This document shows, piece after piece, positions 1-46,918 of a stretch of 64,000 nucleotides of DNA. The notes beneath the pieces are model-generated. The model had not been told where the DNA came from. It saw nothing but the letters and a program-made list of their open reading frames with translations, and made no database searches. A program made the position numbers and the translations under genes. The stretch comes from Cyanophora paradoxa CCMP329 (taxonomy: Eukaryota; Plantae; Glaucophyta), in assembly GCA_004431415.1 (NCBI GenBank), contig QPMI01000072.1, positions 1 through 64,000 on the forward strand. Reading direction: 5' to 3'. Position 1 is the first letter of the stretch. Each line of letters opens with the position of its first letter.

Positions 1-3000
1 CGTCCCGGAACTTTGCATTCAATTGGCAGGCTCGTTGTCCAGACAGAGGGTAAAACGTGTCCTTTGCGCCGTCTTTAGGAGGGGCACCGAATGCCAGAAG
101 AGTAGAGACGGTGCTACCTCCAATGTTAAACGATGCAACACCAGTCCAGGACATGAGCAGAACCCCTCCGTTGCCACACGGTTGGGCCATGTTGGCATGA
201 TCCCGGCTCCATTGCATCATATATTTTACAATCGTCTTGATTAGGAAAGACTTCCCTGTACCGCCTGGTCCGACACACGCCACATGTAAGGGTAGTTTGG
301 GAGAGATGGCAGGGAGTTCCACTTGTCGGCAAGCTGGCATCCCGGCATTCGCAGCTAGCTTTGCATTGTAACTATGCAACCGGAACCAATCAGGTCATTA
401 TAATAAAAATAACGAAAGCCAGCACACTCGGATTGAGAGGTGTAGTGTTTTTCGAGCCGACTAGTCATTTGACGGACGGCAACCATCAGCTCCCGTTGTC
501 GGGGCTTCAATTTCGTTTCCATGTCTGGCAGGCTCATTGAATCAAGATCATGCAAATCGACACTTGAATTCGACGTAGCCGGGACGGGTGGCTGAATCGA
601 ACTAGGTGGCTCAGAGTTGGCCGCCTCTGGTTCCGAAGGGATAGCAGCCGGTGCAATGTTTGGTCCACCACCTTGCGCTCCCGCAGGAGGAACGGAGTCA
701 TGAGGGAGCATTTCGGCATCGACCCCCTGGACTCCTTCGGGTGCACGGGGTCGCACATGGGACGTGGATGATGCTGTGCCAGTGGTCGAGCGATTATCAT
801 GGTGCAAATCTCTCCCAGCAGCCAATCGCGCATCCCTGTCGAATTTTTGGAGAGATCGTTCGAGACGTGCAGCCATATGACAGTGAGTAAACTGTATGTT
901 GTACTCTATAGTTGCACGGTGACGGATGACGGCGGCGGATATAACTTCTGGAGTAACGTCATCCTCAGACTCGACCCCCAGCAGATCGCGCAGTTCGTTC
1001 CGGAAAGGGACATGCATAAAAAGAAGACTGTACAAGCTGTCCGGATCGCCATCCTTCGGAACCCGAACCCGAATTGCGCGCGGTCGACGACGCTGTTGCA
1101 GCACGTGCCGATGGAAAGGTTTGCCCATCGAGGTCCGTGGACACACGCTGGTAACGGAAATTTATGATTACCAGTTGTGTGAAATGCAAGGATCCGATTA
1201 AAAACAAATATACCCGGAGGCAGCAATTTTGGGTCGAAGTGGTGCTGTTGTCTGCGGATGTTGTTTCCGGATAGCCTCATTCGACCATGCCGGATTCGGC
1301 TCCCAATCATTCAAATTAGTGCCATTGTCCATTCCATCGCAATCCACATCCTCGCTTGTGAGATTCGAATCAGGGCCGGCGCCCTTTGGGGCATCACCAA
1401 GGAAATGTATGTTGAACCAATTCATGTACTGCATGAATGTCAACGATTCGAATATAGGTGGCGCATCTAATACATCCATCAGTTCGAACGGTCGTAAAAA
1501 AACCACCCCGAAAGCATGCACGTACCAGCAGGGTCTTTGGTGCGAGCCATATAATAATCGATCTGATCGTCGGCCCATGCATCTTGATCTTCAGGATTCT
1601 TCTGCATCCTGAATTCAAGATCTTTTTTACGACGCAGATGTTTGGTGCGCTTCGACGGAAGATAAGCCCCCACTGAGCATGATGTCCTTGATGAATAAAA
1701 TAAAGGGAGACCTGCCAACAGAAAATGCATATTCAGGTAAATCAAAGTGGAATGATACAATTCAATTAATTCGAAGCCAAGGAAGTATAGGGTACAGACC
1801 CAGGCAATATAATCCTGCTTCCTGTTTCGACATTGTCCGACACCCGAGCATAGCATTACGCATCTATATGAGGGGTCCCGACAGTCAGCGTCATGTGTAG
1901 CAAGGAATCCAGGCACGCGATGCAGCATGCCTTCAGAAGATCTGATTAGTCGACGCCTCATCCGGCAAGTCGCTCAATACGGCCTCCACAGCTTTCATCT
2001 CCTCCGTTCATCCTTAGTCATATAGCGAGAATATACGCGGCTATCTGTAAGGGTTCGTCACTACTTGAATATCCATATTGGCCTGCAGAGCTGGATGATG
2101 ACGTCGTGAAAGTTATTCGTGTAACGATCGTCCTGCGTTGTTCGCCGGAAGATCACCTCTTGTCACCACGGCACATAAATCGCTCTTCATGCGAACTCCG
2201 CAGATGAGTCTTAGAAGCAAACACCTGGGGAAATCCGAAGCGACATTTACAGCGCTCCTTGTATTCCGCCATGAACTTCGCAATGCGGGCAGAACGGGCG
2301 ACGTGCTCAGAAGGTGCTGCTTTTCCATAGCGGCCAACTGGTCGTCGAGGACGCTATTGCGGCGAATCCGGAAGGGGGTCATGTAGTTCCGCACTGTCAT
2401 CTACCGTAGGCAATTTCCGATGACGTCGAAACTTAAAGGAAGCAGCAGGATCGATCCTGCAAGTATGAGAGTGTTTATGTCGATTGAACGGGCAACGTAA
2501 TTCTGTAAACGAGGTGTTGCCCATGGTTGAGCGAAAGGCCTTCCGTTCGAGGTTGCTGAAGTTGAATCGTCGGTTCGCGTACACATGAACGGGGGCAGAG
2601 TAAAAAATGAGGAAATCGAATGACTCACCTCGGTTTTGACGACTGTATCAAGCCACTCACAAACTTGCTCGGCATTGAACGTGGGATCCGAAGGGTCCAA
2701 GTTCGGTGGCGGTGTTGTCACACCATCTCGGATGCGCTCACCCAACCAGATTACCAAATGAGCATGCAGCGATCCACGACTCTGTACCTCATACCTTCGA
2801 TTACATTATTGGCGAGAATTAAGTACGGTATGAACCTAACCGCGAACCGACAAAGAAATCAACCACCGGCCAACCAAATAAGACCTCCCCGCCTCCGATT
2901 GGAAGAGATCAAGCATGGCACGGACAACGCTCGTCGAAATGTTCAGCCACGATTCCAGGGTTATCGTTCAGCAATTTAACAACCTCGTCACGATTCGCAG

Positions 3001-5353
3001 TGAACGCCGTTACATCTGCACTGGACCGGAAACGAATAGATCGATTGCACGCAATAAGTCCGGCCAATGAAGGTCGTCGCTGGAGAGAGTCATGTAGATA
3101 TGAGGAAATCCAATCGTAGTGAACATGCTGTGTAATTTATTTCTCGCGTTGATCCAATACGCGGCTGTACCGCGCACCTAATTGAACACCACTTTGGTCA
3201 GCACAGCAGAGCAGTAATATATACAAGGGCAAAGACGTGAACGTGCGTTACGTGTCATTGTACGGTAGCACCGCGTACGAATGGCCAAAGCGTCGAGGGA
3301 ATGGTCTTCCACAGTACTGTTTATTAAATTTAATGCGTCGGCAACAGTCAAGGGGCATTGGAAGCGACATTGTGGGTGTCACGATTATCGGTTGACATAG
3401 CATTGACTATATGATCCCGCACAAAATTGAATCCACGCCATGCATCATCATCCAATATAATTGACACGGAATTCAGAAGAGCAGCAGGATCTCGCTGGAA
3501 GGAGCAGATGATGCTGCAAGGCATCGGTGTGAAAAAATTCACGGGCCGTGAGTTCGATTGGCCTGGCGGGATCATGCAGGCCGTGCGTGCCTGAAGTAAC
3601 TAACTTAATCTCGGGCGGCACGGTTTCAAATAGCAAATAGCTTACCTGTAGGATAAACTGACAAGAAGGAGCAGACGTCTGTTTCGGGCGCATGCGCACG
3701 GATAATACGGCCGGCGTTTACAGGGAGAGTGCTAAGCGAAGTTCCTTTCAGATTCACGGCGACAGAAGGGCAGATCGGACGGTTCAGAGGCGAGGAGTCA
3801 GAGACTCCGTCATCCGAATCATCACTATCCGAATCATCGGCCTCGCGTGGGTTAACGACATTGTCAGTAGTTCCAGCATTCCATTTCTCAATTTCGGCCA
3901 GTAGCTCGGGATCGGTTGGATCACGCAATAGAATATTCTGATAATACAGGTGCTTGGTGGTATTCCGCAGGCATTCGAGAACTTCGAAGCAGCGATCCAG
4001 CCTAACGCGGTTGTACCAAGTCTCTCCACCTTTCGGCTTTCGTTGATTCACCAAGCAAACCTTCCCTCTTGGTGGAAGTGGGAAAATTGCTTTGATATTG
4101 TTGATGGGGTTGCAGGGTACAAAAATCACTCGTCCTTGAGAACTAGTTGCCCTCCACCCATCCTGCGACCATTCTGCCCTTTTGGTCCTCGAACATGAAT
4201 TAACTGAGATAGCATACGAAATTACATGACGGTAAATGAGAGTGACAAATAGATATCACCTGATAGTTATTAACCGCTGACACATCAGCAATTCCGGGTA
4301 CGTTAAATCAGACAAAAGACGTCGCGTACTTTCATCGACCTCCACACAGTGCAGACGATTCTGGACAAAATCTGCTTTAGCCGGGTGTGTCGATAAGTAT
4401 CCAATAACACATACCAAGCGCGAGAAGGGGCAGAAAGGTCGTTCCGGAGTGCATTGAAAAGCATGGCACCGGGTACAAAATTCGACACTTGCCTGATCAA
4501 CGGGTATTCCATGCAGACGCAATACTGAACACGGTTGACAGCACACATCTGTAAGTACACACTGACAACTCGATTCATGATGTCGTAGCGGTGAAGCATT
4601 CCCAGAAGACACACATTGGCAGCGATGACATGCAATTTATCTGACCGCCTTGACTCTGTGCAGCAGCTACACAGTCGCCGGATGCAGTATAGCTTGAGAA
4701 AAAATAACCTGGCAGCATCCTTTAATGCTTGGTTTGAAATCTCGTTCCAGAACTGAATCGGTTCATAGCTGATGCAAGCATATGCATGAGAAGTAGACGT
4801 GCGTACACGGAAACGCAAACTTACTCGGACAATAAGGTGGCGAAATCCGTGTGAAGTTCCAAGAGACGTTCAGTCTTGTTGCGCCTGCTACGACTTGCAC
4901 TCTTCGCGTGTTCCGAGGGTCTGAGAGGATTCGACGCATGGCGAGCTGCAGGAAAATAAAACAGAGATAAACGGACATGAAAAGAAAATTCAAATGTCAC
5001 CCCGCACGTACCCGAATCATAATCACGCAATAATTGCCTGTCAGAGTCAGGGAGCGCATTTCTCAGGCGACCACGGTACGAATTCTCTGAAAAAGCGCCC
5101 GTCATGCCAGTTCACTAAGGGTTGCAAGTTCTAATAAACACTCACTTGTTTGTCTGCTAGGCTGGGTCGATCGGTGAGCTATAGACCGATGGGCCTCCCA
5201 ACAAGGACGATCAGCGAGTACGGTGCCACACAGACCACATGGAAATTTGTCGTCCAGTGTAATATCGTGGGCACCAGCCAAGTGGTATCGCCATTCATTC
5301 TCGGTCCGAAATGCAGCCCTGCATGAGGCGGCACCGACACAACGGTACGCAAA
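1..5353 (-). CDS. Helitron2/Helentron-type Rep/helicase (RepHel) transposase; multi-exon, several 1-bp frameshifts, truncated at left window edge inside the PIF1 helicase
   Basis: Manual minus-strand translation. Rep motif 1 region GTAAYW...KLHSMFTTIGFPHIYMTLSSDDLHWPD (~3059-3180). HUH motif EVQSRGSLHAHLVIWL (2743-2790). HKHSHTC (~2460-2480). NNF...ANMDIQVV...YIL.YMTKDE tyrosine motif (~2005-2120, frameshifted). RTMSKQEAG (~1812-1840). PIF1 Walker A GPGGTGKSFLI (248-271) and motif Ia TGVASFNIGGSTVSTLL (~95-145). Upstream VIFVP...RVRLDRCFEVLECLR...LYYQNI segment typical of these elements. Two C2H2 fingers at 5146-5353. GT-AG introns. True start may lie further upstream (~5700-6000). Confidence 0.93.
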
Positions 5354-6125
5354 CTATAAAAAAGATGCACGCAAATTAGCGAGAGGCAAACGGTCCGAAA
5401 CAAAAATACCACTTGCATGTTGAGCTGGGGTTGCATGCACGAATCGATGGAGAAGAGGCGGAGTTGATAAAGAAGACTGCGACAGATGGCACGGTCTAGG
5501 TGCAATTTTAGGAAAACGTTGCACCTAACATGGCAGCGACGTTACACCGGAATATAATACCCATATTATTCAGCACGCACAATTTCGAGAAAACGTGAGG
5601 GCGTGAATGATGAAGAACCGGTAGAGGTTATAGGCAAATTGCACATCGGGCGGTGCAGCCCCGCCATGAATATATTGACTCGTTCAACCTGCGTCGACAA
5701 ATGTAAGAACATTCCACGTCTCCACGCAACAGCACATATTCGGCAGCAGCGCGCAGAGGGCCTCCGAGATCTTGACACGATACGCACGGGCCAAATTCGA
5801 GGACGCGCCCCGGCCGCGAGAAGCCCTTGCGTCTAAAGCCTGCAACGCGTACGCTCTCGGCGCCCTGCCTCGGCAGGAAGGGACGTACAGCGGCGCACGC
5901 GACGGGAGCACCAGGGCGACGTGCGGCCGTCAAGGACACACCGCCGGCCGAAAGTCCACGATGGTCCACGTGTACCAGGGTAGCTGAGCACGCTAGACGC
6001 CAACTGGGGATGCAGTTCCTAAAGAAGATGCTAGGCGGCAAGACTAACCGTACTAATTCAACGACCACCCACAGGGGTATCGCATAAAAAACACAGTAGT
6101 TGGAAGCAGCACCAGCTATATTAAG

Positions 6126-6709
6126 ATGTCTAGCGGGAAGACGATCGCCATATCCAAGGACCTTGTCGCAAACGCGACGCAATACGCACAGAGAGCATAC
6201 GATAGCGTATTACGGGATGTTAGACAGGATGCCGTTGCCAATCTCGGAGACTTCCCCTCGGAATGCAGGGCCGACCTCGTAGAGCTGGAATACACAGCAT
6301 TGCAGTTAACCGGCAAGCGGCTGATCACGAATCGACAGTTCAATCGACTCGTATGGGCGGCGGAGGTGTACGCGCAGTTCGCCGAAGTTGACCGGTGTCT
6401 GCAAGCAGAAGCTATGGAGATTAAGCGTGACAACGAGCCTAGTCAGTTCTGCGGCGTATTAAGCGTCTCCCCTTTTCAGCCGGGACACGATGGCGAGTGC
6501 TAGCTTTGAAACGGAAGTGGAATTGGAAACTGAAGGCGACTGACGAGAAACACGTGGAAGCAGCGGCAGCTCAAGATCGGGACATCGAAGATCTGGAAAT
6601 ATACGCAACAGTATCAGAGGCAATCGCTGCAGTGGAGACTAGGATCGCAGATATTGAACGCGGAGGGCAACGAGCAGCGGGGACTGTAATAAGGCTGGTG
6701 GGTTGGTAA
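6126..6709 (+). CDS. Small alpha-helical/coiled-coil hypothetical protein (~181 aa), divergent from RepHel; one 38-nt intron (6442-6479)
   Basis: ORFs 6126-6503 and 6497-6709 join in frame by removing gtcagt...ttttcag, giving ...DNEP-T-GTRWRVLALKRKW...; heptad-like C-terminus (VSEAIAAVETRIADIERG). Confidence 0.65.
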
Positions 6710-7225
6710 GCATGAATTATCTGTACATGAACACAATAACGTATGCGTGGATTTGAACTGAAACATGCAATCGGATGCAGTGAGGAGTGTTTGGAGGTCC
6801 GGAGAAAGAAGAAGAGCGCGTGGGGAAAATGCAGCAAGCATGCAATTACACGGGACCAAACCTCCAAGATTGACAGTACAAATTGTAGGCAGTAACTACC
6901 AGTTGTTCAGCAGGAATTAATATACATCATTCTAAGATGATATCCAACTTTAACTGGTGAACTTGCAAGGCAGATTCCAGAGCCTGGCAGATGCAAGGCA
7001 GTGGCATGGCAGCAGACGAACATGAGAGATGCCACAGTGCAGGTTCCGCAAGCCAGAAGCAGGTATATATACGGAAGGAACGAAGGGCGGGGGGCCAACT
7101 GGATGCATATGCGGGTTGGATAGAGGCAGGGAGAATTAGGGAAGCTGAAGGAAAATGCGATGTAAGATGTAAGAAACGCGTGTGTAAGAAACACTCATCG
7201 ACAAAATTGGGCGAACCTGGAGCGA

Positions 7226-9258
7226 TCAGTCGTCAAGTACTATTTCGTCGACGACCTCGAAAGGGTGGTAGCCGGCTCGTGACCGAGACATCTCTTCGAC
7301 GAGGACGGTAATACGAAGCGCGAGCCGGGCGGATCGATCGAGGATGGCAGCGAGAGTCTCAGAGGCGCCCATGGCTGCCGCGTGCACCGCCTTGACCGAA
7401 TCCTCATCGGCCCACTGGATGATGTGAGAGGCACGGTTGCAGATGCTGGTGACCGACCGGAGCCCCTGCTGTATGTCGGCCACAAGGCCGCTGCGCTGAG
7501 ACCGAGCAGCGAGAAATGCCTGGAAGTGGCCGGCCACCGCGCGCGTCACAGTGACAACTCCAGCGACCGATGGCGTGTCGTAGAAGACCTCGGCGAGACT
7601 GTTGGACGCACCGAACGCTGCAGCAGCTGCAGAAGCTGCATACAGTGGAATACGGCGGGAGGACAAGAGGAGGCCACCGACAAGCCCGAGAGCGGCAAGC
7701 CGAGGGCAGTTGCGGGCGACTTGTGCTATAGAGCTGACCAGAATGCCGTGCACTTCAGGCGCGGGGGCCGCTATAGGAATCACGAGGCGCTCGAGGGTGT
7801 CCGATGAGAGGCGCATAGCAAAGTCCGATACGAGACGCGTATTGTACTTGTGATCGAAGATGCGATGAGCAGAAAGGTCGAGGGATACAAGATATTTGAG
7901 ATTGTGGATGAGGTCGGCGACGTGGATGAGTTTCTCGGGCAGCACGGGGCTGCGCAGAACCTCGAGGGACCACGGTAGGTAGTTAACATCTATGCACCCG
8001 CCGGGTACTGACGGGATCGAGTTCTCAAAGTGAGTAATGTGATTCTGCAGATGGTCGTCCATCCACTCAAAATCAAACAGACTGCGGAGATTGACACGCA
8101 TGGTTGACGGGGCCGCCACTGCCGGCGACGGCACCACGTGCGTGCGCGAAGCCCATGACTCGTAATCACCAAAGATGTCGAAGCTGACCATCGGAGAGTC
8201 GCACTCAAATGTGATCTCGACGGGCGCTCGCAACAACGGAGGTATGAAGTACAGCCCCTCGTGTGCATGACCCACGGGAAGGACCCTCGGACGATAACCG
8301 ACCGAGCATCGAGCCGCGACTCGACGAAGTGACAGCTGTTGGTTGCGCACTGGTACGCAATGGCGCCCGTAGATATCTCGAGCCGGTCAAGGAAGAACGG
8401 ACCAAGGGACCAGCCTCCGAATCTGCGACGAGTGCATGTGATTAAAATGCAGGATCACTTGTAAAAGTAGAACAGGAGTAAATTTCGCTGTTGCTTCAAA
8501 GATACCAGCGATGAGACGGCGAACCTATCAACATAGCAGGAGCGGGGGGCAGTGGTGCCAGGCAGCGGCAAAGGCTTGAAATGCAGAGCGTCCAGGCCTT
8601 CGAGCTCATTGGATGCCAGATCATCAAAGACGAGCACCTTGGCCGACGTGTTCTTGGCGACGACGTACCATTTGCCGTGCACGGGGCGCGCGTTCCCCGG
8701 GTGGGCGGCGCTAGTGGACAGGGCGAGTGACCACTGATCTGCCGGGATGGCTGCTGGCCCATCGAAATCGGAAGGCCGAAAAGATTCGTTGACGATAACG
8801 TCCAAGAACTTCGCGATGTACGGATGCCGACGGGGCGGGACGTCGAAGATGCGCGATACGACGCGGAGTAGGCTGCTCTTGCCAGAGAGGAGGTGGTGGA
8901 CCCAGCGACCGAGGAAGGCAAGAATAGGCGCGGTGTGCTGTTCACTAGAAAGGGGCTCCGCAGGGTTGACGTAGCCAACGTCGCGGAGCGCCGCGTCGAG
9001 GTCGAGAACGACGCCGCGCTTCCCGTGATAAGGGACCACGGACGACGACGACATGAAAATACTGCGGGCCCGCCGATGCGTGTGTGCGAACGCCACAGCC
9101 GAACGGGGGTCTGATCCGAGGTGACGCATGATTTCGGCCATCACCAGGTCTGGGAGCCCGTCCAGAGGAGAGAACCTGGAACGGATAGTGGTCGTGTGAT
9201 AATCAGTCCGTACGCGCTCAGCGGCCGGAGGTGGTCGGGTGCGGGGCGCTGGAGGCAT
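7226..9258 (-). CDS. F-box protein with LRR-like C-terminal region, copy 1 (intron 8423-8524; 1-bp frameshift near 8275); extra upstream exons likely to ~9950
   Basis: F-box-like LDGLPDLVMAEIMRHLGSDPRSAVAFAHTHRRARSIF (~9055-9165). LRR-like LVSLDLS, LERLVIP, NCPRLAALGL. Collinear with the paralog at 12316-14399. Confidence 0.7.
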
Positions 9259-10981
9259 AGGGTGGGGTAGAAGCAAAGAGTGCAGTCTGGAAGCGTGGGG
9301 CCTGGGCTTGAGGGTGACGGGGAGTTGAAGGGGGGCGGCCGGGACGAGGAGCTGGAGGGCAGCAAGGGAAGGGGGTCTGGGTGCGGCAGAGCAGGTTGAT
9401 GGAAGACTCGGCCCGGGGCGGGGCGAGCAAAGACGACGGGGGCGAACAGCGGAGCACAGGGAGGGTTTGAAAGGCCCATTTGGAGTTTCGGTGAGGGCTT
9501 TAAACTAATATTCGAAGTACAGTCCAACAGTGCGCACGTGCACGGCTCCGCGGCCGCCGGAGCGACATCCGGATCCGCCGGGAAGACTCTCGCTGGATCT
9601 TCAGAAGGAGGACACGCCGTGCCAGACGTAGAAGCAGATACAGGGGCATCAGCTGAAGAGAACCTGCTGAGCGATGAGCACAGCCGAATTTCGGACAACC
9701 GTCTAGCTGCATGCGCCATGCTAGCTGGATGCACGTGCGCACCCAATCGGCAAATCCGGAGGTGATGCAGCTGCTCCTGCAGATGGGGCATCTGTGGCTC
9801 ACCTAAACGCAGCTGCAGATCCATGGGGGACAGAATAAAGGGGCGGACCGGGCAAGCTGTTCGTAGTGCGATTCGCAGGTCGACCACGCTTTGAGGGAGG
9901 CCTGCGAGCGAGATTGTGCAGCGTGTCGAGACGGACTGAGCGGTAGGGCGCATGGCGGGGCGCGCAGCGTGCAGCGCACCCTACGGGGACGCGAACATCG
10001 GCGATGGGATTTGCTTCAACGTCCGTCGACTCCGTAGACTTCGGTTTGCAATGGCGGGCCCTGCGGCAACGAGAGTAGACAAAGTACATGAGTGCGTGCG
10101 GAACAAGACGAACAGGCCCGATTCAGGCGCGCGGGCACCGAGTCTTCACCATGACCGCGCGTCCGATGGCTACAGGTGAGAACGGCCGGGCGACGGCAGA
10201 TTTTTGTAATATGCGATCAGCCGCAGAGGAGGCCTGATTAGCACGGGGGGTATCATTAAGGCGGCAAAACTGGCAATAGAAACCGGCTGCGATCCGGCGG
10301 CGAAACAGCCGTAGGGAGAGCAGACCCACCTGTTAAATTGGACGGGTACGTGCGGCCAGGTAGACATGAGCCGCCGATGATCTGCAGATTCGTGCACAGT
10401 CGCTGACCTGGCTGTAAGCGCGACGGCGAAGCGCGAGCTCGGCGCCTGCAATAAAACTACATGGAAGGATGCGGTGCTACATCTGGTGACCCCCAGGGTG
10501 CGGGCTGTCACACGCACGACCGGCGAAAGCGCGCGCCGCTGTCAGAGGAAAATTAATTCGGTGCACAAACAGAGTACACGATTGACACGGAAGATCACAA
10601 GTTCCTTCGGAAGTCCCAGTGATGCGGGAGAGCACTTCGCGCGCAGCGCCGACTTCCGAACTTGGCACAACGGACAATACGGTGACTGTGTACGTTCATA
10701 TATGGCTTCCGAATAACAAACATTCACTTATAATAATGCTCAGGATCGAAGAAGCACGAGAAAGCATCGATAATTCAAATCCATCGCCAAGCCACGTGAC
10801 GACCTCGGACGACAATTCTGGTGGGTATATACCCTATAAATCAGAAGTCATGTGGATATGGTGCACTAAACCAAATTGTCATGTCAGCCCCGCCCCGAAT
10901 TCTGCAGCGGCGGCTACTTATATAATAAAATATATTTGACATGACAGAAAGCACCGCAGCCCCTAATCAACAGTCCTATAG

Positions 10982-11700
10982 CTAGTAGTCTTCAGACGAA
11001 TCATATCCACATACATGGTCATCGTAGCAGTCCATTTCATTGCAGCAGAGACGATTGCAGATTTCGCCGCGGTCCTTGCCGTGTGTAAGGTCCTCTCCTG
11101 GCGCTGCTGGTGGTGCATGTCTCTCATTCCTGGCACGAGGATCGCCGTATCCCGATAATGAATGTTCCGCTTCAGAATCCGCCGACAGCGTATAACTGTG
11201 TGATTGGGGCAGAAGGTTGTGACAAAGAAGTAATCAAGCGCGCCCATGCGGGCATGAGCCCATGTTCGATCGGTACAGACATCGCATTTTATCATCTCGC
11301 TGCTATGTTCCTCACAGTAGAGGCTGCACAACAAGGGCGTCAGCTCCCGTCAGATATGTTGGTTTTGTGAGTAGGGTTGCAATTGAACACTTAAACGTCA
11401 GATATACACCACGCGAACCTGCCACAATCTTCCGATGAGCAACGGTATACCGTATGCTGACGACCGCAAGTACTGGCCATGGAGGGTTCGTGCAAGTCGT
11501 CATTGCAGAAAAGAATAGGACAGCCAGTGACGGATGAACACTGAGCAAGCCGGCACGTTCGTGCGGGTTCGAGCGGGCATGGGCCGTGCATACCGTCGAT
11601 GGCAGGGCACGGTCCGTACGCATGTGCACACGCGACGGCAATCTCATCCCCGGAACACGCTGCAGTCGAAGTAGGAGGTGGAACGGCTTCAGCTGACGGC
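10982..11700 (-). CDS. Cys/His-rich putative zinc-binding protein (spliced; one apparent frameshift ~11170)
   Basis: Joined reading ...CPILFCNDDLH...RCSSEDCG|SLYCEEHSSEMIKCDVC...FCPNH...ICNRLCCNEMDCYDDHVCGYDSSEDY* with a gttcgc...tgtgcag intron; stop at 10982-10984. Confidence 0.55.
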
Positions 11701-12315
11701 ACCATTACTATATGCTGGATCGAAATAACGTACCCCAAACGGGTACCCTAGTCGCTTCATGGCTCAGATCCATACATGACCCAGGCTCCATGCATCTACT
11801 TAAGCTTGCCTGCGAGCATGCCGGGCTTGCCGCCCGCTCTTCCTCCGCCTAGCCCCCGCCCTTGCCCTTTGCCCCCCTGCCCCGGCCCCGCCCCTCCTCC
11901 CCCACCGCCGCCGCATCCTCATCGTCCGCGGTCCTTGCCGCGCGGATATGAGAATAGCGTACATACACATAGCGGGATGCAGACCTGGATTAATCAGTCG
12001 TCGAGTACTACCACATCCAATTTCAAAAGGGCTATATAGTCCCAGGGGGGCTTGACATATACTTGCACATCGCGCCTTAAAAGCTTGTATAGATAATCAC
12101 ATGATGTGCCATGAGGAGAGTGTACAACTGAAGAGAGGGTACAAATTGCATCACGGGAATGGCACAAGTCACGCAGGAGGCAATAAACAAGTACGTGTGT
12201 ACTGAACTAGCGACCGATAGTTCAAGCAGTTGATATATCTGAAGCGTAAAGGATGTCAAGTGCGTGGATATGCGAATCACGTAGATACACATAGCCGGGC
12301 GCATACCTGGGTTGA

Positions 12316-14399: not shown

Positions 14400-14444
14400 A
14401 GGGTGGGGTAGAAGCAAAGAGTGCAGTCTGGAAGCGTGGGGCCT

Positions 14445-19713: not shown

Positions 19714-19899
19714 GAAATAAACAGCACCTACGGACGGACCGGAGCAAATCCCGGACGGCCGGGAATGCCTGCAACCCTGTAAAGGTGTACCGGGCGGCAA
19801 TTCACAGGGTATACCCCCAGTACATACCGACGGACGTACGTACACAAAAAGTGCACATCCAGGATCCAATGCACAGCGAGCCGGCCCCGGAAATGCACA

Positions 19900-20744: not shown

Positions 20745-20989
20745 ATTAATTTAAATTGTACCCACGAGGCGAAAATTAAACGTTACCTGTACATGAGTCG
20801 ATGGCTCTAGACTCGGCATCCCCGGAGGCAGAAAGGCTGGAAACACGGGCAGCACCCCGCCATGCCTGCAAGACGTGCGAGCTCGGACGTCACCATGTCA
20901 ACTATAAGCAAGAGGCGACTCACGAAAAGGGGACGGCGGGGACAGCGGCCGATATCGGCGTGCCGACGGCCGAGAGCGGTGCCTGAGCC

Positions 20990-21530: not shown

Positions 21531-21639
21531 GGACGACGGACGCGAGCCTCCTTCCATGAGTGGCACCGGCACCAACGACCTGCAACGCACGTGAAATTGG
21601 CACCCCGCCGCGACAAGCAAGTGAGCAGGAAAGCGCATG

Positions 21640-22870: not shown

Positions 22871-23427
22871 CTCACTTTCGACACTTCAGGCTTAGTTCGA
22901 TAAGGAGACGGATAATCTACAACCGCAATGACGTCCGATTCAGCTGCAGCATACACAAACTTCAAACACACAGAACAGAGGAGGAATCGGAATGCGAATT
23001 CCACATACCCTCCGAAGATGAAGAAGCTCCCGAATTCGAAGGCGACGGTACGGGGGCCGCAAGGGATGCAGCCGGCAGAGGCGCGCCAGTTCCCGCGAGC
23101 GACGACTGCCCAGTACCCCTGCGACGCGATAAGGGTATCCAGCAGCGCATGAGCTCGGAGGCAAACATAAGCATCAAGTGCACGAGGGTACGTACAGAAC
23201 GGGGGCGGAGGGACCGGCAGTCGGACCACGGGCGGCAGGGCCAGCGGCCATCATGGCCCCGCCAACCGACGGGAGAAGCTCCTGCCCAAAAGAACTGCAA
23301 CGCGACGCACGCACGGTCGCCCGGAGAACCAACATGGCAGGCGGAGGGACTGTGAAGCGCACGGGGCTGATGCAGCGAGAGAGGCGGTTGAGGGCGCGCC
23401 GCTAGGCCGGAGCAACTCCTGGTCAAG

Positions 23428-23990: not shown

Positions 23991-24189
23991 AGCTCGGCAC
24001 GCAACAACAGCAAGATAGTGCAAAAAGCAACGCACGGAGCTAAAGCGACAGATGCGACGGGGATTGCGCAGACTGATGTCAGAGGCTCTTTGCCAGCCAC
24101 CGCCCTCCGATTAGCTTCTGGTTATAACCACCAAAAATCAGAAAGTTGTAGACTAAATTAAGAAGATAAGCACTGAAACAAACAGACCT

Positions 24190-25305
24190 TTTTCTTTCCA
24201 AACTAAATCGTCGACCGCAGCGCGATCACGAGTACGGAAATCGGCCCACCATGACTGGGACTGTACGACAAAAGAATACCACTCAAATACAAAAAGGGAG
24301 TGAAAGGAAAAAAACAACAGGTAATCATACCAGAGATCCCAGTAAGGAAACTGCAAGATTTGTCGATCTAATACTGGTACCTACGCAGAGAATTAAAAAT
24401 CACGAATGAAAGCACTATAGAAAGTAAGATAGATATGCACCCGAAGACTGCCCCTGTACCGCAGAAACTCTAGCATTCAAAATCGCAATCATCTCTTGTT
24501 TACACGAAAAGACCATATCCATGACTTTCGCAACGGCATCATCCAGCAACGGCTGTAGACCTTCCAATTCCTCCTTCTGCGCATCGACTGTAGAGTGCAG
24601 TTTGGGATACGCCTCCTTCGGAAAACGAGATATTTCATCATCCTCTGCAGGAAACAGAGGCTGCGACTGCATCAAGTCCGTAAATTCAAGGTGCAGCGCC
24701 CAAGTCTCCATGCCATGAACGAAGGCCTTCTTTCCAGCCGCAAACATAGAATTCACGTTGACGCCCTCTTCACCTGCGTTTGCAAGAACTCGAAATTCTA
24801 TGCAGGCATTGAAGGTCAACTTGTACAGACTCCATGTCCGATAGTAGCTGCATAACAAAGCTGCGTATTTTGATGACTCCGTTATCAGCAGGTCAAGGTC
24901 AACTATGTAGTCTTCACCAGCAGCCTTAGGTCCGGCCAAAAATGGTCCCAGAGCATCATCTGGCCCCAGAGCATCGACTCCAATCGATGGCATCTTACGC
25001 TTGAAGGATGAGATCTGTTTCTTTACAAGGTCCTTGATTTCGAGTAGTGTGCCAGAAGTAAAAAGTCCTTCTGTAATGAAGGGTTCAAGGAAATCGTCGA
25101 TGTCCGATTTAGCCGTATCCTTTGAACGCAAAAGCTCCCAAGCCAGGCGCATGCGCCGATGTAGCGGGATGCTTGCTACTTTGCATGCACTCAGATAGTG
25201 GTCATCATCGTAATAATGAGCGCACTGAGCTGATATATGCTCCAGTACATTCACCAGGATAAGAAACTCAGACACCCGTCCCCAGCTCATGACGCGATGC
25301 TTCAC
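24190..25305 (-). CDS. Hypothetical all-alpha protein (orphan); ~290-codon exon plus probable downstream exon(s)
   Basis: Uninterrupted 296-aa ORF 24415-25305 with natural composition and amphipathic helices. Confidence 0.6.
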
Positions 25306-26819
25306 TGCGTATCATACATCAGAAGAAGCCAGATAAGGTAATGCAAAGGTACAGAAACATCATTGGGCATACATATACCTCGAATAGGAGATGCAGACAA
25401 AGCAACAGACATTCACAGCGGGCACCCCGAGATGCACACCTAGTATGAAGGGGCAAACATCAGACAAAGCAGTTACACAGTCGTCGGGAGGCAGTACAAC
25501 CACTGAAAACAGCGTACCAAGGACGGATACAACACAGAATGCAGACCGAGAGGAAGCAAAGTGGGACAAAAGAACCACTCAACGCCCCGACTTGAAGGCC
25601 ACCCACGCGCTGGAGAGCGAAATAAGATGATAGCTAAACCCTCATTATGGGCAGGAGGGATGGCGCATGGGACGGGCGACGCACCAGAAATGTTAGCGCC
25701 AAAAAGAAGGGAAGACAACCAGGGCAGCAGACATAAAAGGCTTTAATCCGATGACCCCTACAGATCGAAGAGCCATACATTAGCAAGTGCGGTCACCGCT
25801 GAGAGCCGCGATGCAGGATCTGAGCTTATAACAAGTGCGTACCGATTTTCGTCAAAACCGAAGCTGCAGTCAGTAAAACGACGGTGACGGTGATGGCCGG
25901 CAAAGGAGCGGAAAAGTCCCAACCCTGCGTAAAGCCACACATCAACTCCATGGCTCGCAACTGTACTATGCGCGGCGAAGGCAGCACGGCCTCACGCTAG
26001 CCGGGGCGCTACTAGCGATAGAATCGCTAATAGTCAATAGGTGGTCTCTAGCACCGCATGCGCAACTGACTAACCGCGGCAGTTACGGTTGCATGCAACT
26101 AACCGCGAGACCAAGGGCCCCAAGTCCAAACATTACGACCGGCGAGCGACGATAGATGTAGAGAAAGCGTGCACGTACCAAGCACTATGATCGTTGCTTC
26201 TAGGACCCAGCCGAGCCACGGACGACGCAAGCCCGGAGCGATGAAGCTGGCGCACGAACGAAGCACGCCTGGCCAAGCCAGGATAGCGGGACAGCTCTTT
26301 CCACTTGAAGCCGAGCAGGCCGCGAGGCCACCGCCCGCGGAAGCTGATCAGACTTGAGGCCAGGCACGCCAGCGCCACGCCAGGGATTGACTGATGTCCG
26401 GGTACAAAAACAATGCAGGAGATCAAATTCTACGGCCTTAGTGGCGCCCGTACGCGTCGGACGCCGTCACTTAAAAGACTGCAGCACTTTAAGCACAGCC
26501 ACGACAGTACGGCGCTGGCCTCGACGACTCTCGCGCGCGCGCCGAGCCTAGCACAGGAAGGAATCCCGCCGGCACCCTGGCCGGCGCCACCACCAAGCCG
26601 CACAAGCGGGACAAAAAACATCACTAACAGACTCTGAGACCGGGGCCGGGAATCAGAAAGGCCGGCGCCGCCGGTCGCAGCAGCTGATACGACTTCGACG
26701 TCGACAGACAGCAGCTTCATTCAAGACAAGCAGAGAGTCCAACGCCTAGATCCCCTGCCATGAGCAGCAAGAACAAATTCAACATGCAAATACAATGACA
26801 TACACACACACAGCTACCT

Positions 26820-29800
26820 AGGCGCGGCAGGGCGGGGGGCTGCGCGGCGGAGCAGGGCGGCGGACCCGGTGCAGGCAAGATGGGTCCACGGCGGATGCGA
26901 AGCGCAAGCGCGGCCGCCCGGCGGATCCCGGAGCTGCTGCAAGCAGAAGCGGGCGCAGTCAAACCGGGGCAGCTGGGGACGGGGCGGCAAAGGAGCGGCG
27001 TCGCGGGGCGGCCCCTGCCACCTGTACGGGGGCCCGGATGCATAGCGTCGTTCCAGGGGCACAAAGTTGTAGGGATGGGAAGGGAGAGGAGGGGGGGGGG
27101 CGAGGCCTAGGGCTGGGAAGCGGACGCTGGAAGCCTAGGGCTGGGGTGCGGGCGCTGGAGGCCTAGAGCTGGGGCGCGGGCGCTGGAGGCCTAGGGCTGG
27201 GGCGCGGGCGCTGGAGGCCTAGGGCTGGAGCGCGGGCGCTGGAGGGGGGCGCGGGCGCTGGAGGCCTAGGGCTGGGACGCGGGCGCTGGAGGCCTAGGGC
27301 TGGGACGCGGGCGCTGGAAGCCTAGGGCTTGGGCGCGGGCGCTGGAAGCATAGGGCTGGGGTGCAGGCGCTGGAGGCCTAGGGCTGGGGTGGGAGTGGGG
27401 GGGGGGGGGGGGGGGGGGGAGGGGCGCTGAGGTTTCATTAACGTGAGCGATGCGCGTTGCATCCTGCACATGGCGTCAGCGGGATGCGGGCAGCAGGGGG
27501 TACAGACGCGCGGACCAGAGGCCAGAAAGCTCGAGAGACTCGAAGACCGAGAGGTGCGCGAAGGCCGAGAGGTGCACGCGCCTGATTGCCTCTCCCGTCC
27601 AGGGCATGCAGCCCCTCCGGCCTGCCACCTGCACGGGGGCCCGGGTGCCTAGCGTCGTTCCAGAGGCACAAAGTTGTAGAATTGGGAAGGGAGAGGGGGG
27701 GGGGAGGGGGGGGGGGGGGGCGAGGCCTGGGGCTGGGGCGCGGGCGCTGGAAGCCTAGAGCTGGGGCGCGGGCACTGGAGGCCTAGGGCTGGGGCGCGGG
27801 CGCTGGAGGCCTAGGGCTGGGGCGCGGGCGCTGGAGGCCTAGGGCTGGGGCGCGGGCGCTGGAGGCCTAGGGCTGGGACGCGGGCGCTGGAAGCCTAGGG
27901 TTTGGGCGCGGGCGCTGGAAGCATAGGGCTTGGGCGCGGGCGCTGGAGGCCTAGGGCTGGGGCGCGGGCGCTGGAGGCCTAGGGCTGGGGCGCGGGCGCT
28001 GGAGGCCTAGGGCTGGGACGCGGGCGCTGGAAGCCTAGGGCTTGGGCGCGGGCGCTGGAAGCATAGGGCTGGGGTGCAGGCGCTGGAGGCCTAGGGCTGG
28101 GGCGCGGCAACGATACTGCGGGCGGAAGCGGGCGCACTCAAATAAGAAGGATGGAAGATGTCGCGCCAATGCGCGACCGCCCGGCAGCGCTGCTGCAGGC
28201 GTAAGAGGACGCGATCAATTCGAGGGAGCGGGGGACGGGGCAGCAGGACAGTGGCGTAGCCGGACGGCGGACCAGGCGCAGGCGAGAGAAGTCCACGGCA
28301 CGTGCGGGGCTCGAGCGCCGGCGGCCACCGAAGCTGCTGCGGGCGGGAGCGGGCTCGATCAAATCGGGGCAACGAGCCGTCAGGGCGGTAGGAGAGCGGC
28401 AGAGCCAGGCAACGAACCCGGCGCAGGCAAACTGGACCCACGGAAGGTACGGGAGCGAGCAATTCGACCGGCGGCCCTGCTGCGAGCAGGAGCGGGCATG
28501 ATCAAATCATAAGAACATAGGACGGCGCGGCAGGAGAGCGGCGGAGCCGGGCGGCAGACCCGGTGCAGGCAAGAAGAATCCACGGCGGGTGCGAAGCCCA
28601 AGCGTGGCCAACCGGCCCAGCTGCTGCAAGCAGAAACGGGCGCGATCAAACCGGGGCAGATGGAACGGGGCGGCAAAGGAGCGGCGTCGCGGGCGGCGAA
28701 CCCTGCGCGGACGAGAAGAGGCCGGCGGCGGACCAGGCGCAGGCGAGAGGAGTCCACGGCACGTCCGGGGCCCAAGCGCCGGCAGCCACCGAAACTGCTG
28801 CGGGCGGGAGCGGGCGCGATCAAATCGGGGCGACGAGCCTTCAGGGCGGTAGGAGAGCGACGGGCTAGGCAGCGAACCCGGCGCAAATCATAAGGACGAG
28901 GGACGGCGCGGCAGGAGAGCGGCGGAGCCGGGCGGCGGACCCGGTGCAGGCGAGATGGATCCAGGGCTGGGAAGCGGACGCTGGACGCCTAGGGCTGGGG
29001 TGCGGGCGCTGGAGGCCTAGAGCTGGGGCGCGGGCGCTGGAGGCCTAGGGCTGGGACGCGGGCCCTGGAGGCCCTGGAGCGCGGGGCGGCGAACCCTGCG
29101 CGGACGAGAAGAGGCCGGGCGGCGGACCAGGCGCAGGCGAGAGGAGTCCAAGGCACGTCCGGGGCCCAAGCGCCGGCGGCCACCGAAACTGCTGCGGGCG
29201 GGAGCGAACGCGATCAAATCGGGGCGACGAGCCTTCAGGGCGGTAGGAGAGCGACAGGGCTAGGCAGCGAACCCGGCGCAAATCATAAGGACGAGGGACG
29301 GCGCGGCAGGAGAGCGGCGGAGCCGGGCGGCGGACCCGGTGCAGGCGAGATGGATCCACGGCGGGTGCGGGGCCCAAAAGCGGCCGCCTGGCAGCGCTGC
29401 TACTAGAACGCGATCAGTTCGAGAGAGCGGGGGACGGGGCGGCAGGACAGTGGCGTAGCCGGGCGGCGGACCAGGCGCAGGCGAGAGGAGTCCACGGCAC
29501 GTACGGGGCCCGATCGCCAGCGGCCACCGAAGCTGCTGCGGGCGGGAACGGGCGCGACCAAATCGGGGCGACAAACCGTCAGGGCGGTAGGAGAGCGGCA
29601 GGGCCAGGCAGCGAACCCGGCGCAGGCAAGCTGGACACACGGAAGGTACGAGGCGCGAGTGTGGTCGACCGGCGGCCCTGCTGCAGGCAGGAGCGGGCAT
29701 GATCAAATCATAAGAACAGGGGACGGCGCGGCAAGAAAGCGGCGGAGACGGGCGGCGGACCCGGAGCAGGCAAGATGGGTCCACGGCGGGTGCGGAGCCC

Positions 29801-30480
29801 AAGCGTGGCCGACCGGCAGCGCTGCTGCCGAGGGAAAACAACGCGATCAATTCGAAGGAGCGGGGGACGGGGCGGCAGGACAGTGGCGTAGCCGGGCGGC
29901 GTACCAGGCGCAGACGAGAGGAGTCCACGGCACGTGCGGGGCCCGATCGCCAGCGGCCACCGAAGCTGCTGCGGGCGGGAGCGGGCGCGACCAAATCGGG
30001 GCGACAAACCGTCAGGGCGGTAGGAGAGCGGCAGGGCCAGGCAGCGAACCCGGCGCAGACAAGCTGGACACACGGAAGGTACGAGGCGCGAGCGTTGTCG
30101 ACCGGCGGACCTGCTGCGGGCAGGAGCGGGCATGATCAAATCATAAGAACGGTGGACGGCACGGCAAGAGAGCGGCAGAGACGGGCGGCGGACCCGGAGC
30201 AGGCAAGATGGGTCCACGGCGCGTGCGGAGCCCAAGCGTGGCCGCCCGGCGGAGCTGCTGCAGGCAGAAGCGGACCGGATCAAACCGGGGCAGATGGGGA
30301 AGGGGCAGCAGAGAAGCGGCGGCGCAGGCAAGCTGGACACACGGAAGGTACAAGGCGCGAGCGCGGTCGACCGGCGTACCTGCCGCAAGCAGGAGCGGAC
30401 GCACTCAAACCGGGGCGGATGGGACGGGGCGGAAAAGGACCGGCGTCGCGGGGCGACGAACCCGGCGCAGACGAGAAGTG
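26820..30480. repeat. Compound GC-rich repeat field: 28-bp minisatellite arrays (27105-27390, 27720-28105, 28960-29075) plus shuffled longer units (28100-30480)
   Basis: 28-mer ctagggctggggcgcgggcgctggaggc in tandem. Longer blocks recur several times, e.g. ggaccaggcgcaggcgagaggagtccacggcacgt, ccaccgaagctgctgcgggcgggagcggg, cagggcggtaggagagcg, gatcaaatcataagaac. Confidence 0.95.
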
Positions 30481-31589
30481 GCCCTGCATCAGCGGCGGCG
30501 CTGATGCAGGCAGACAATCACCTGATGACCATTAAACGCAGAAGCGCACAAACAGCAAAACCGCCGCTCACCGTGGAACAATCGGCCGCATATACGCGAC
30601 TTCCGCGCCGCTGCGGATGGTCCGCGCTGCCGGCGATCGCTCCGGGATCACATCCTTCGATCGATCTGCGGCGGACAACATGATTCGACAACCACAGCCC
30701 AACCTCACACTTGAGGCCGGGCAGGCCCGACCTCACAAGGATCACACCGCGTAACGGGGGGGTACACTACCACAACCGAACGACCGTGGCCCACGGTCGT
30801 TCGACGAGGGGGGGTACACAGATATGTAGACTTTCCGCAAGCCGACACTGTCCCACCCGCGAACGCCGTCCAGTCTGGCACACACGAGATGCCAATGCCA
30901 TGGAAAATACCGGTACTTACCCTCCGAGGCTCACGCGCGGATTTCCTAATACCACACTTCCGCCTCGCACGCGGCGCTCATATCTACCTTCGCTGATCTT
31001 GCCACGACACGACAGACCCACGAGGACGACCTCGGCAATTGGTGGCGCCATTGGCCGGTCAAGCTAGCAAGGAGGGCCTTTCGAAAGCAGCGGCGCACGC
31101 TCCAACCAGGCGAGCTTCGTGTAACACGGGCATCCATGTGCGTACACTCGCTCGGCCAGGAAACCCGACAGGCGCCTGAAAGTAGCGCAGCAAACGCGAT
31201 GCACGCTACTATGTTAGATGCTGGTGTCGGGAATGGAGTACAAAAGAGCCACCAGCATGGATCAAGTTCAAAAGACGTGCGCCACATACCTGCACCCTGA
31301 AGACCCCTGACATCGACCCAATTCTGATGATGGCCGCATGCACAGCCCTCATTTATGCTACATGGATAGAAGGAAGACTGTCACTACTCGAAAAACACGG
31401 CCGTATCCCTTGAATGCAGCGAGTGCTACTTATTTGGAACCGACCGCACCAATTCAAACAGTACTATTCAACAGCAGAAGCTTGCTTCTCCTGACCATCA
31501 AGCTTCTCGAGAGATCATAAACATGACAACTAGCAATCCATCTTAATTTCAAGAACTCAAAGCTCATAGCTGTAATGGAGGCTCACCCT

Positions 31590-33077
31590 AACCCTCAGCA
31601 TGCTCATCGGGAGCCTCTTCCAGGGACGGTGGCTCTGAACAGCATAACGTCCTGACAGCAACACCTGTGTCCATAACGACAGCGCTAGCATTGCTTAATC
31701 TATCAAAAACGCATGCACAGCACTCATATATGATATGAGGATGACTGCCAGCCTGCACCTCGAGAGTTCTGCAGCACAGTGCAATCGTGATTGCCGCAAT
31801 CATAGTTCTACTTAGTACGCCTATAAAAAGTACGCTTAAAAACAGATTATGCCATGAACCACGGGTTCGGCCGGTACTACTTGCTATTGCTTGTGAGACA
31901 ACTCAGCGACGAGTGCACCTGCCTCCTCCACGAGGGACCGAACCTGCTCCTTCGTAAGGGCATCCTGTAGAAACAGATACGGCGATCATATGTCAGTCGA
32001 AGACAGATACGGACAGCAAATGACACCGGGATTCCCACACCTCAGCCGCAAGAGCTTCAGTCCTCCCCGCTTCCTCGTTCCGACACCAACATGCTCCTTT
32101 TCGATAGCAGCCATAAGGACCCTAGCCTGCATAGTTCGGATTACAGCTGGCAATCGCAGGTGCACAGGATTTGCAATAGCCCACCTTAGACGCAAGATCT
32201 TCATTCCTCCTCCGAAGGACTCCAGGTACTCGTCCCTGTGCAAGGGCCAAATGAGCAACATCGAAGGGAGACATGTAAAAGCATACGTAAGGCTCACCTC
32301 GACTTCTTGTGAGCCACAACGATGTTATTAAGACGGACAATATGCCAGCATAACACCGCGAACGAATCCCGGATACGGTCATCAGCACCATGGCAGAATC
32401 AATCAAGACATCTGCATCATGAAGCTGAGAGGCGGAGAGAAGACCCGAGCTGTCGTCCTGGAGGTCCTTCTTCAGCTCAGGAAAACATGGCATGACTTTG
32501 CTGATTTCACCCAGAAGCACGTCAAAGTATTCAGCACTACCAGGCATACTGCCCGGCAATGCAAGCAAAGCAAGCGACCCTGAGGAGCTAAAGCACAAAT
32601 CAAACACAACCGGTAGTGCCCAAAGAAATAACGAATGACAGAGTACAAACCCGTTACAGGGCATTCAATCCGTTGACCGTCTTCTGATCTGAGCGAGCAT
32701 TCTGAATGCTGCAGTTCTTCATGGTACAGATCGTACACCCGAAGCAGGCTCTGTATATGACTATCGAGCACTCCCCTGTGTACGACAAGTACAAGCCGAA
32801 GGAAATCAAGATTCTTGGCTACAGTCCGAATCGCTTCTTTACCAGGACTCGTTGGTCTGACCCGCTGCATGATGATAGCACGGACCAGGGGCGCCAAACG
32901 ACACAATGAATTCAGATGCGAGTGTATGGATCGGCTCCAAAGACGCCATACACCGCCTGCTTCCATCACGCTTGATAGGCAGCTGCGGATCCAATCCACG
33001 AGGTCGCTTACATGACCGGACTTGCACGGGCAAGCAGGGAACTGTAGAACCATTAGAAATTTGAAAAACATGCGCAA
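31590..33077 (-). CDS. Hypothetical spliced or frameshifted helical protein (orphan)
   Basis: Overlapping protein-like minus ORFs 32472-33077, 32122-32664, 31986-32297 and 31588-31803; no motif recognised. Confidence 0.45.
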
Positions 33078-34443
33078 CGATCAACACGTACATGATGGGA
33101 CTCGCACTGAGAGATAGAACTCGACACAGGCGGCATCCAGCAGGTACAGTTTACACCTGCAGCGATACACCAGGTCATTAGCATTTAGACCGCATCAGAG
33201 CGGACCCGGAAACACGAGCATGCGCACGGAGCAAGAGCACCAGGCGCGCAGAGCGCTCACACGACGACTGAACGGTAGTAGGACCAGGGCGCAGGCGTCT
33301 GGCGGGCAACGATGGCAATGCAAAGAAGTCAGCAGCAGGCCAGCGCATATAACAAGCAGGACAACAGTGGCAGGGCAGCGCGTACAGCGGTCCGGTCTAG
33401 ATCCGACAGGCAGCGATGGCCTGAAGTACAAAAGCAAAGGAGGACTTGCGGCCTGAATGCGCCGCACACCGAGAGAGGCTGGACGCGACCAGGGTGCGGT
33501 TGTGAGCGAAGCGGAGCATATAACGAGTCGGGCGCCAAAGACAGGGCGGCACGTACAACGGAACGACGGGAGCTCCAGCTAGGGCGACACCAGCACGGCC
33601 GCCGGGCCAATTCCGAAAAGTGGAACGAGGACGCTAACAACAGCTAAGATGCAGCGGCCGCAATGCCAGGACGTGCGGCCAGAAGGGTATACGCAACACC
33701 ACATAACCGGGTACACCAACGCCAAGTAGTCGATCGCGAGCGATCGCGAACGTCCGACGTCGACGTCGACTGCCGATCGAGACAAGTCAACTAGGACCCC
33801 AAGCAAAGACCCGATCTCGGAGACTTCAAAAATCATGTACCCCCCCAGAATCTCATAACAATAGTACATAGGTCGCAGAGCTTTTAACAATGGGCCGTAC
33901 AATTGCAGACCTTTACAACTCGAAAGTCCGACAGGTACTCCTTAAACGTCATTGGATGGAAGCAGGTACTACTCGATTGACGGGTCACGAGTCGGCAGTA
34001 TAGCCTCTGGTCTCTTCTTCCCTTCGGTCAGAATTGAGACCCGAGGCTGATTTGCAAGCTTGATTTAAAATTGGTCAAGTTGGGTCAACGTCGACGTCAG
34101 CGGTTGAAATCGATTGCTGTGGCGGGGTACAACAGCTTCACAACCTGGAGCACTTTTAGAGCTGCAGGAGCCTGAAGGCTCCAGCCGAAGGCCCGTAGCT
34201 GCGCCGCGAGCGCTCTCACGACCAACGGCAGCCGCCGGCACGCACAGCCGCGCCCCCCAGCAGCGCCCTATGGCCTAGCTGGCGCACGCGCTCATGATCA
34301 AAGAAGCGGCTCTCATGGAGAGCAGCTGTCACCTCCTCAGGCCTCTCGACAGGCGCAGCTAATAGCGCAGCCGCCTGCACCGCCAGCCCAGGGCCGCTCG
34401 GTTCCTTCCCCAACACGAAACGGCCGCTGACGGCGACCTCCAA

Positions 34444-46836: not shown

Positions 46837-46918
<82 letters not shown>

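Follow-up and report, generated by a model that had tools for sequence, protein, structure and literature searches.

A probable giant Helitron2-type transposon carrying whole accessory genes in Cyanophora paradoxa

Introduction

The DNA analysed here, a 64,000-nucleotide (nt) stretch of Cyanophora paradoxa contig QPMI01000072.1 (the window), has a Helitron Rep-helicase (RepHel) gene at its left end, followed by a long run of mostly orphan genes. Is the left half of the window one rolling-circle transposon that carries whole genes of its own, or a collection of separate insertions? A first-pass annotation made from the letters alone had proposed the former. Such a cargo is unusual, as Helitrons normally take up gene fragments only. 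Our analysis favours the same answer: a single giant rolling-circle transposon of HLE2 (Helitron2) type, lying on the minus strand, probably accounts for positions 1-34,050, which would be its 5' 34 kb, and is inserted in the promoter region of the host gene that starts at 34,444. The proposal is well supported by a transposon terminus at 34,050, a fall in read depth at that point and an internally deleted derivative.

Materials and methods

The C. paradoxa assembly is haploid and was made from PacBio reads (PMC6704402). Contigs from two DNA-like runs, X7 (2024) and X1 (2012), and from two RNA-like runs, X17 and X19, were placed on positions 30,250-34,800. The RNA nature of X17 and X19 is a guess; their contigs are spliced. 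Depths cover the same interval and are given throughout as X7/X1. Gene models outside 30.3-33.7 kb were drawn by eye, and Pfam searches were made exon by exon.

Results

A transposon terminus at 34,050

The block had been expected to have a sharp boundary somewhere near 33.7-34.4 kb. It has one, with a 5' terminus at 34,050 and a fall to single-copy depth there. Two features describe it:

34,002-34,050, minus strand: 5' terminus of the element, with a TCAG start at 34,050 and a 49-nt hairpin whose outer stem begins at the first bases and whose inner core is CC-GAA-GG.
33,898-34,050, minus strand: high-copy terminal segment common to many shorter family members, with a depth of 4110/131 against 474/17.9 in the adjoining DNA.

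None of 200 shuffles gave a hairpin as strong as the terminal one (z = -4.5). Loose contig ends fall within the terminal segment at 33,915, 33,972, 34,002 and 34,035 and, together with the depth of the bin 33,898-34,049, they mark a terminus that is common to many short family members. The host contig starts at 34,022/34,023 and has a depth of 70.8/5.28. Single-copy host DNA ends at ~34,050, with the multi-copy block to its left. The junction with the host reads AAA^TCAG, which is A^T in this register, the boundary being uncertain by 1-2 nt. The position of the end is fixed by contig ends and depth, independently of folding; hairpin strength by itself is insufficient. The loose end at 34,035, read on the minus strand, shows an ATATTT end abutting head position 16 and so lies 15 nt into the head; insertion of a family member into a head would account for this.

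No second head of the same family lies between 34,050 and RepHel, and neither does any stretch of 8 nt or more that repeats the head in inverted orientation. A Helitron 5' terminus immediately upstream of RepHel (~6 kb) had been named beforehand as evidence against a single element, and no terminus of this family lies there. No HLE2 3' end (an asymmetric inverted repeat plus a hairpin) was found inside the window, and the 3' end is predicted to lie left of position 1. The element head was not found in metagenome contigs. A hairpin at 30,483-30,510 followed by CTGA was considered as an HLE1 3' end and rejected, as it sits in a spliced exon.

Copy number and an internal deletion

Two further features connect the terminus to the interior of the block:

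33,039-34,009, minus strand: terminal kilobase, with a depth of 474/17.9 and ~4 near-identical copies; a deletion derivative has its right breakpoint at 33,039.
12,278-12,302, plus strand: left breakpoint of the deletion derivative, in which 12,303-33,038 have been removed and a 5-nt filler has been copied from 33,051-55.

Left of the terminal kilobase, depth was 318-339/13.1 over 30,804-33,068 and 238/9.3 over 30,322-30,833, while diverged single contigs placed on the 30,250-34,800 region had depths of 107-113/3.6-7.4. The depth ratios agree between two DNA runs made twelve years apart, and we infer that near-identical copies number ~4, 3 and 2 in nested steps leftwards from the head.

Both DNA runs have a contig break at 33,039/33,068, with the loss of about one copy of depth. 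The loose end before 33,039 matches window positions 12,278-12,302 exactly, and matches nowhere else in the window. The junction joins 33,039 to 12,302, an internal deletion of 20,736 nt, and it has an overhang of 35 nt, which is k-1 plus the 5-nt filler and is what a deletion allele rejoining the common path should give. One copy runs from the head through 33,039 to 12,302 and on towards RepHel, and the far end and the inner cargo therefore belong to one element family. The change in depth and the loose contig ends at 34.0 kb, together with the deletion derivative, reveal several copies that have a common sharp end and different flanks. Single-copy cargo had been put forward as a finding that would count against the proposal; instead, the block at 30.3-34.0 kb is multi-copy, and the second of two F-box-like genes described below has a near-identical copy on tig00021273.

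These data bear on whether the block might instead have formed from several independent insertions, or by recent segmental duplication of an island of orphan genes, with the head at 34,050 belonging to a short non-autonomous element. Such an origin would suit the steps in copy number along the block, and the plus-strand gene at 31 kb that has diverged paralogs in other contexts. However, the multi-copy DNA stops exactly at the transposon terminus, the 4-copy contig spans the head into the first cargo gene, and the deletion junction, by joining points 20.7 kb apart, largely refutes it. We regard it as very improbable.

The RepHel gene

The mobilising gene lies at the left edge of the window:

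1-5,670, minus strand: RepHel gene of HLE2 type, with C2H2 fingers, Rep motifs 1-3 and the start of a PIF1 helicase; it is intron-rich and runs off the window.

The first-pass annotation had noted a RepHel gene, and this is borne out: its Rep motifs and PIF1 Walker A motif could be located on the minus strand between ~5.7 kb and position 1. A C2H2 finger is present at 5,239 (PF00096, E = 0.0009), Rep motif 1 at 3,093, motif 2 at 2,790-2,758 and motif 3 at ~2,040-2,007 (all three in translation), and Walker A at 271-248 (PF05970, E = 0.001). PF14214 was matched as well (E = 0.06), both families on single exons. Both His and both Tyr residues of the HUH Rep motifs are present. Motif 2, which spans one intron, reads FVR-YEVQSRGSLHAH. 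Helentron/HLE2 proteins are distinguished by F/Y-x-R before motif 2 and by the Ser in RG(S)xHxH (PMC4067079), and FVR-YEVQSRGSLHAH carries both features. The T start with a hairpin from the first bases, which characterizes HLE2 5' ends, is found at 34,050; HLE1 elements have Leu in RG(L)PHxH and no 5' hairpin, whereas Ser and a 5' hairpin are present here. Judged by the sequence of its Rep motifs and of its 5' end, the element is HLE2. Helentrons in the strict sense have an AP endonuclease fused after the helicase, a part of the gene that would lie left of the window. The exon at 3,647-4,180 resembles DUF6570, an HLE2 marker domain, by eye and has no Pfam match. Searches with single RepHel exons gave no homologs (one query contained intron sequence and the other search had a length window).

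Several single-base frameshifts interrupt RepHel. They are probably assembly errors, since the single-base gaps at 32 kb, the sole part of the block compared with reads, were all filled: five gaps within 600 nt, each filled in both DNA runs. The same five (in 32,064-32,601) are seen when the assembly is compared with all Illumina contigs. Polishing of this assembly is thus poor in multi-copy regions, where apparent pseudogenes should be regarded with suspicion.

An alternative is a composite. The head at 34,050 would then be part of a large Helitron2, non-autonomous or chimeric, with cargo extending down to ~7 kb, and RepHel would belong to a second, nested or adjacent element whose head is of another family or decayed. 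Helitron2 elements do self-insert, forming multi-headed composites (PMC5148889), and the deletion junction links the head only as far as 12.3 kb. A T-started hairpin at 5,528 would be a candidate second head, but it sits in an apparent RepHel intron, and we disfavour it as a RepHel-proximal 5' end. RepHel also lies head to head with the gene at 6,129, with which it has a promoter region in common, and no head or 3' end of the same family lies between it and the terminus. The GC content at third codon positions (GC3) can be read both ways: the F-box-like pair is higher than RepHel, yet RepHel and cargo 30 kb away have identical values (0.50-0.53). Taken together, we consider a composite unlikely.

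The cargo genes

Besides RepHel, the cargo comprises about twelve whole genes and is partly transcribed. Those other than the F-box-like genes, which are described in the next section, are as follows, from the terminus inwards; no Pfam family was found for any of them.

31,880-33,667, minus strand: outermost cargo gene, with 9 exons and 8 GT-AG introns supported by the RNA-like runs (X17, X19); no Pfam family.
30,811-31,500, plus strand: cargo gene with 3 introns, spliced in RNA-like contigs and convergent with the preceding gene.
30,777-30,803, no strand: perfect 12-bp hairpin between two divergent spliced RNA contig ends (30,772, minus; 30,811, plus), 38 nt apart.
26,000-30,772, minus strand: transcribed gene in which an exon-intron unit has been amplified (repeats of 144/289/433 nt and of 28 nt; introns of 80-82 nt recur).
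24,100-25,290, minus strand: orphan gene whose first exon has 281 codons, predicted to be all-helical (a low-confidence, single-sequence fold).
21,600-23,200, minus strand: orphan gene with an internal 183-nt exon duplication.
19,100-20,900, minus strand: orphan gene or genes, with a 309-nt tandem duplication at 19.1-19.7 kb.
10,985-11,705, minus strand: Cys/His-rich gene of 2 exons; no Pfam family.
10,100-10,850, minus strand: probable small gene, containing an F-box look-alike without support.
6,129-6,760, plus strand: orphan gene, head to head with RepHel; no Pfam match.

All three cargo genes tested against RNA-like contigs are spliced. In the array gene, introns 30,380-30,461 and 30,522-30,571 are spliced out, and further left the RNA-like runs contain 40-65% of the words of 7.2-13.7 kb, which suggests transcription there. 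In the outermost gene, at least 349 codons are open once four exonic single-base gaps are filled from Illumina contigs, compared with 217 unfilled.

The block differs in composition from its surroundings. AT skew is +0.195 over 1-34,050 and -0.086 in the host gene at 34.4-52.6 kb. GC3 is 0.50-0.53 in RepHel and five cargo genes and 0.65-0.71 in the F-box-like pair and one plus-strand gene, compared with 0.78-0.94 in host exons, so that the reported change in codon GC beyond 34.4 kb is borne out. Two other generalizations of the first-pass annotation need qualifying. Nearly every gene had been placed on the RepHel strand; there is a one-strand skew, but two genes (6,129-~6,760 and 30,811-~31,500) are on the plus strand. 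Introns had been described as short and plain, and cargo introns are indeed short (50-90 nt), but so are those of the host gene at 54.7-59 kb, and the GC-rich amplified exon-intron array at 26.8-30.5 kb is not plain.

Low GC3, orphan genes and F-box or Cys-rich genes are common in endogenised giant-virus regions, and this counts towards the block being a viral fragment that happens to hold a Helitron. Endogenised giant-virus fragments have been reported in C. paradoxa (PMC12344493). However, the genes have many introns and are spliced, the exons searched contained neither viral hallmark genes nor viral Pfam families, a search of viral contigs gave no relative, and the block is bounded by a Helitron2 end. 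That the block as a whole is viral is thus highly improbable; for single cargo genes such an origin is conceivable.

The hairpin at 30,777-30,803 is flanked by GTACCCCC direct repeats, coincides with the copy-number step at 30,804 and is present at another locus too (loose end at 30,813); it is possibly a compact two-way promoter. The neighbouring plus-strand gene (31,012-31,504) has two diverged (~82-87%) expressed paralogs elsewhere, which end before the neighbouring gene, and the representation of both differs between X1 and X7. GC-rich, host-like segments at 11,850-11,950 and 16,260-16,930 lie upstream of cargo genes and are duplicated with a 5-kb unit (below); they are perhaps captured host promoter or intron DNA.

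F-box/leucine-rich-repeat-like genes

Three F-box genes had been counted in the block. One tandem F-box/leucine-rich repeat (LRR)-like pair was retained, below Pfam thresholds, together with a weak motif at 18.9 kb; a look-alike at 10.8 kb had no F-box match in Pfam and was rejected.

7,226-9,258, minus strand: F-box/LRR-like gene 1, tandem paralog of gene 2.
12,316-14,399, minus strand: F-box/LRR-like gene 2; EukProt tig00000282_g23833 is a model of its C-terminal part.
17,200-19,000, minus strand: gene of several exons, whose N-terminus has a weak F-box-like motif (18,930-18,827; PF12937, E = 0.29).

The pair arose by a tandem duplication (7.2-10.2 and 12.3-16.3 kb; 5.14-kb unit, 75% identity). 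The two copies have a 344-nt identical tract over the F-box and LRR parts that are ~55% identical, as expected from conversion of the adaptor end and divergence of the substrate end; the tract is possibly an assembly collapse. The open reading frame 12,319-13,605 matched the EukProt proteins tig00000282_g23833 (99%), tig00020553_g10719 (88%) and tig00021273_g19902 (100%) over the aligned parts and had no EukProt match outside C. paradoxa. Gene 2 has a near-identical copy on tig00021273 and an 87% paralog on tig00020553.

The nearest language-model neighbours of the pair are F-box clusters, with low recognition by the tool's own measure. A predicted LRR-like C-terminal half consists of repeated strand-helix units at 330-480, where the predicted local distance difference test (pLDDT) score is 60-80 against 44 overall, and the best Foldseek matches of this low-confidence model are TIR1, COI1, NLRC4 and SKP2 (E = 2e-4 to 1e-2, template-modelling score about 0.2).

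The most likely role of the pair, which we hold at somewhat below even confidence, is that of Skp1 adaptors through which host proteins would be degraded to the benefit of the element; otherwise the proteins would be passengers. That such adaptors would target the silencing machinery is a guess, and a doubtful one. For the earlier suggestion that these F-box proteins modulate host defence in the manner of P0 or VANC, the evidence goes no further than the weak F-box motif and the modelled LRR-like fold. Our literature search returned no paper on transposon-encoded F-box anti-silencing factors.

Host genes and other features of the window

The very long plus-strand host gene at 34,444-52,650, whose start lies ~390 nt downstream of the element head, has repeat-filled introns; those in 38,770-51,180 repeat copies of the gene's own exon ends with AT-rich filler. 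By eye it contains a nucleotidyl-cyclase-like motif (36,786-36,872), a P-loop (~38,365) and a TPR-like end, and looks like a gene of soluble adenylate-cyclase/AAA/TPR type; the short exons tried gave no Pfam match. The minus-strand host gene at 54,690-58,980 has short plain introns and high GC3, had no Pfam match on the exons tried, and probably encodes a secreted or membrane protein with beta-rich repeats. The AT-rich segment at 60,550-61,490, with 23-nt inverted arms (60,616-638 and 61,431-453, 91%), is probably a small non-autonomous DNA transposon.

Discussion

We favour a single giant Helitron2-type element extending from 34,050 leftwards through RepHel. Several observations weigh against this reading or parts of it. 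Contig depth does not equal copy number, and in X7 the host value is depressed by GC bias. At the flank the sequence is A^TC and not T^T, where HLE2 elements insert without duplicating the target. Other T-started hairpins of similar z occur inside the block, at 17,703, 5,528 and 30,804, and by folding alone any of them could be the head of another family. No second locus joining RepHel to cargo was seen, and the searches for homologs of RepHel pieces were blank. For the F-box-like genes, the match of genes 1 and 2 to PF00646 (E = 0.021) scores 15.2 bits against a cut-off of 20.5, that of the third motif (18.9 kb) to PF12937 (E = 0.29) scores 11.4 against 24.3, and the structure model is of low confidence (pLDDT 44).

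If the element is a single one, RepHel would nick at the TCAG end, as in known Helitron biology, and a strand would be peeled off through all of the cargo genes up to a 3' hairpin and inverted repeat left of the window, with the resulting circle integrating elsewhere. Since no more than RepHel and the two ends is required, genes in the interior could be duplicated, as in the 5-kb F-box unit and the exon arrays, or lost, as in the 20.7-kb derivative and the short non-autonomous members. Because codon use and introns of the cargo are mostly RepHel-like, most of it would have resided in the element family for long, rather than being freshly captured from flanking host DNA.

If true, a >34-kb, RepHel-encoding Helitron2 whose dozen or so genes are intact and contain introns, and which has recent near-identical copies, would mean that rolling-circle transposons can carry more than has been known, and whole genes in an alga could be moved and multiplied by this route. 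Transposon genes may then account for many of the 'orphan genes' annotated in Cyanophora. C. paradoxa represses repeats via CpG methylation (PMC12344493), which makes transposon-borne ubiquitin-ligase adaptors a concrete and testable counter-silencing hypothesis. A bolder proposal, which we think improbable, is that Cyanophora hosts a still-mobile class of giant (35-40 kb) autonomous Helitron2 elements, rolling-circle counterparts of Starships, with whole accessory genes of their own that include F-box/LRR adaptors recruiting the host SCF ligase against silencing or defence factors.

We found no paper on Helitrons in Cyanophora, and no description of a RepHel-bearing Helitron2 of >34 kb with about twelve whole genes in the literature (excluding Repbase reports and theses). 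To HLE1 elements the likeness is limited to the A^TC junction. FoHeli1 and FoHeli2 of Fusarium oxysporum start with TCAG or TCAGT, have a CC-GAA-GG core and end in ATATTTT (PMC5148889). The Cyanophora element resembles them in its TCAG start, terminal hairpin, CC-GAA-GG core and self-insertion near the head (PMC5148889), and a Cyanophora family member has an ATATTT-like end similar to their 3' end. However, FoHeli1/2 are 5-6 kb long with one gene, compared with >34 kb and about twelve extra genes, and the Cyanophora element has a longer, 49-nt hairpin and a flank that is not TNAT.

Helitron2 elements of Chlamydomonas, namely CRe-1/2/3 with Fanzor (PMC3627910) and Helitron2-2/-3_cRei with TET/JBP (10.1101/2022.06.16.496473), are likewise algal and carry whole, spliced and expressed accessory genes, but of single types; the Cyanophora element is larger and has more genes, among which no Fanzor- or TET-type cargo was found. 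Giant Helitrons of maize, which are HLE1, reach 39 kb with up to nine gene fragments, and fungal Helitrons (Pleurotus HELPO) reach 14 kb with captured expressed genes; full-length gene capture by Helitrons is described as exceptionally rare (PMC6431247). The present element is like these in size or in expressed genes, but the Cyanophora block holds RepHel and whole multi-exon genes together. HELIANO lists about 20 captured domains.

Genes 1 and 2 are like F-box/LRR proteins of the SKP2, TIR1 and COI1 type in their N-terminal F-box-like motif and predicted RNI-type LRR solenoid; they differ in that no sequence homolog was found outside Cyanophora and that Skp1 binding is putative. As a whole, the element recalls Starships (PMC9156397) and Polintons, which are also giant and cargo-carrying, with a mobilising gene at one end and a set of accessory genes. 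Those elements use a tyrosine recombinase or an integrase, whereas the Cyanophora element has an HUH Rep-helicase, so the resemblance is one of analogy only.

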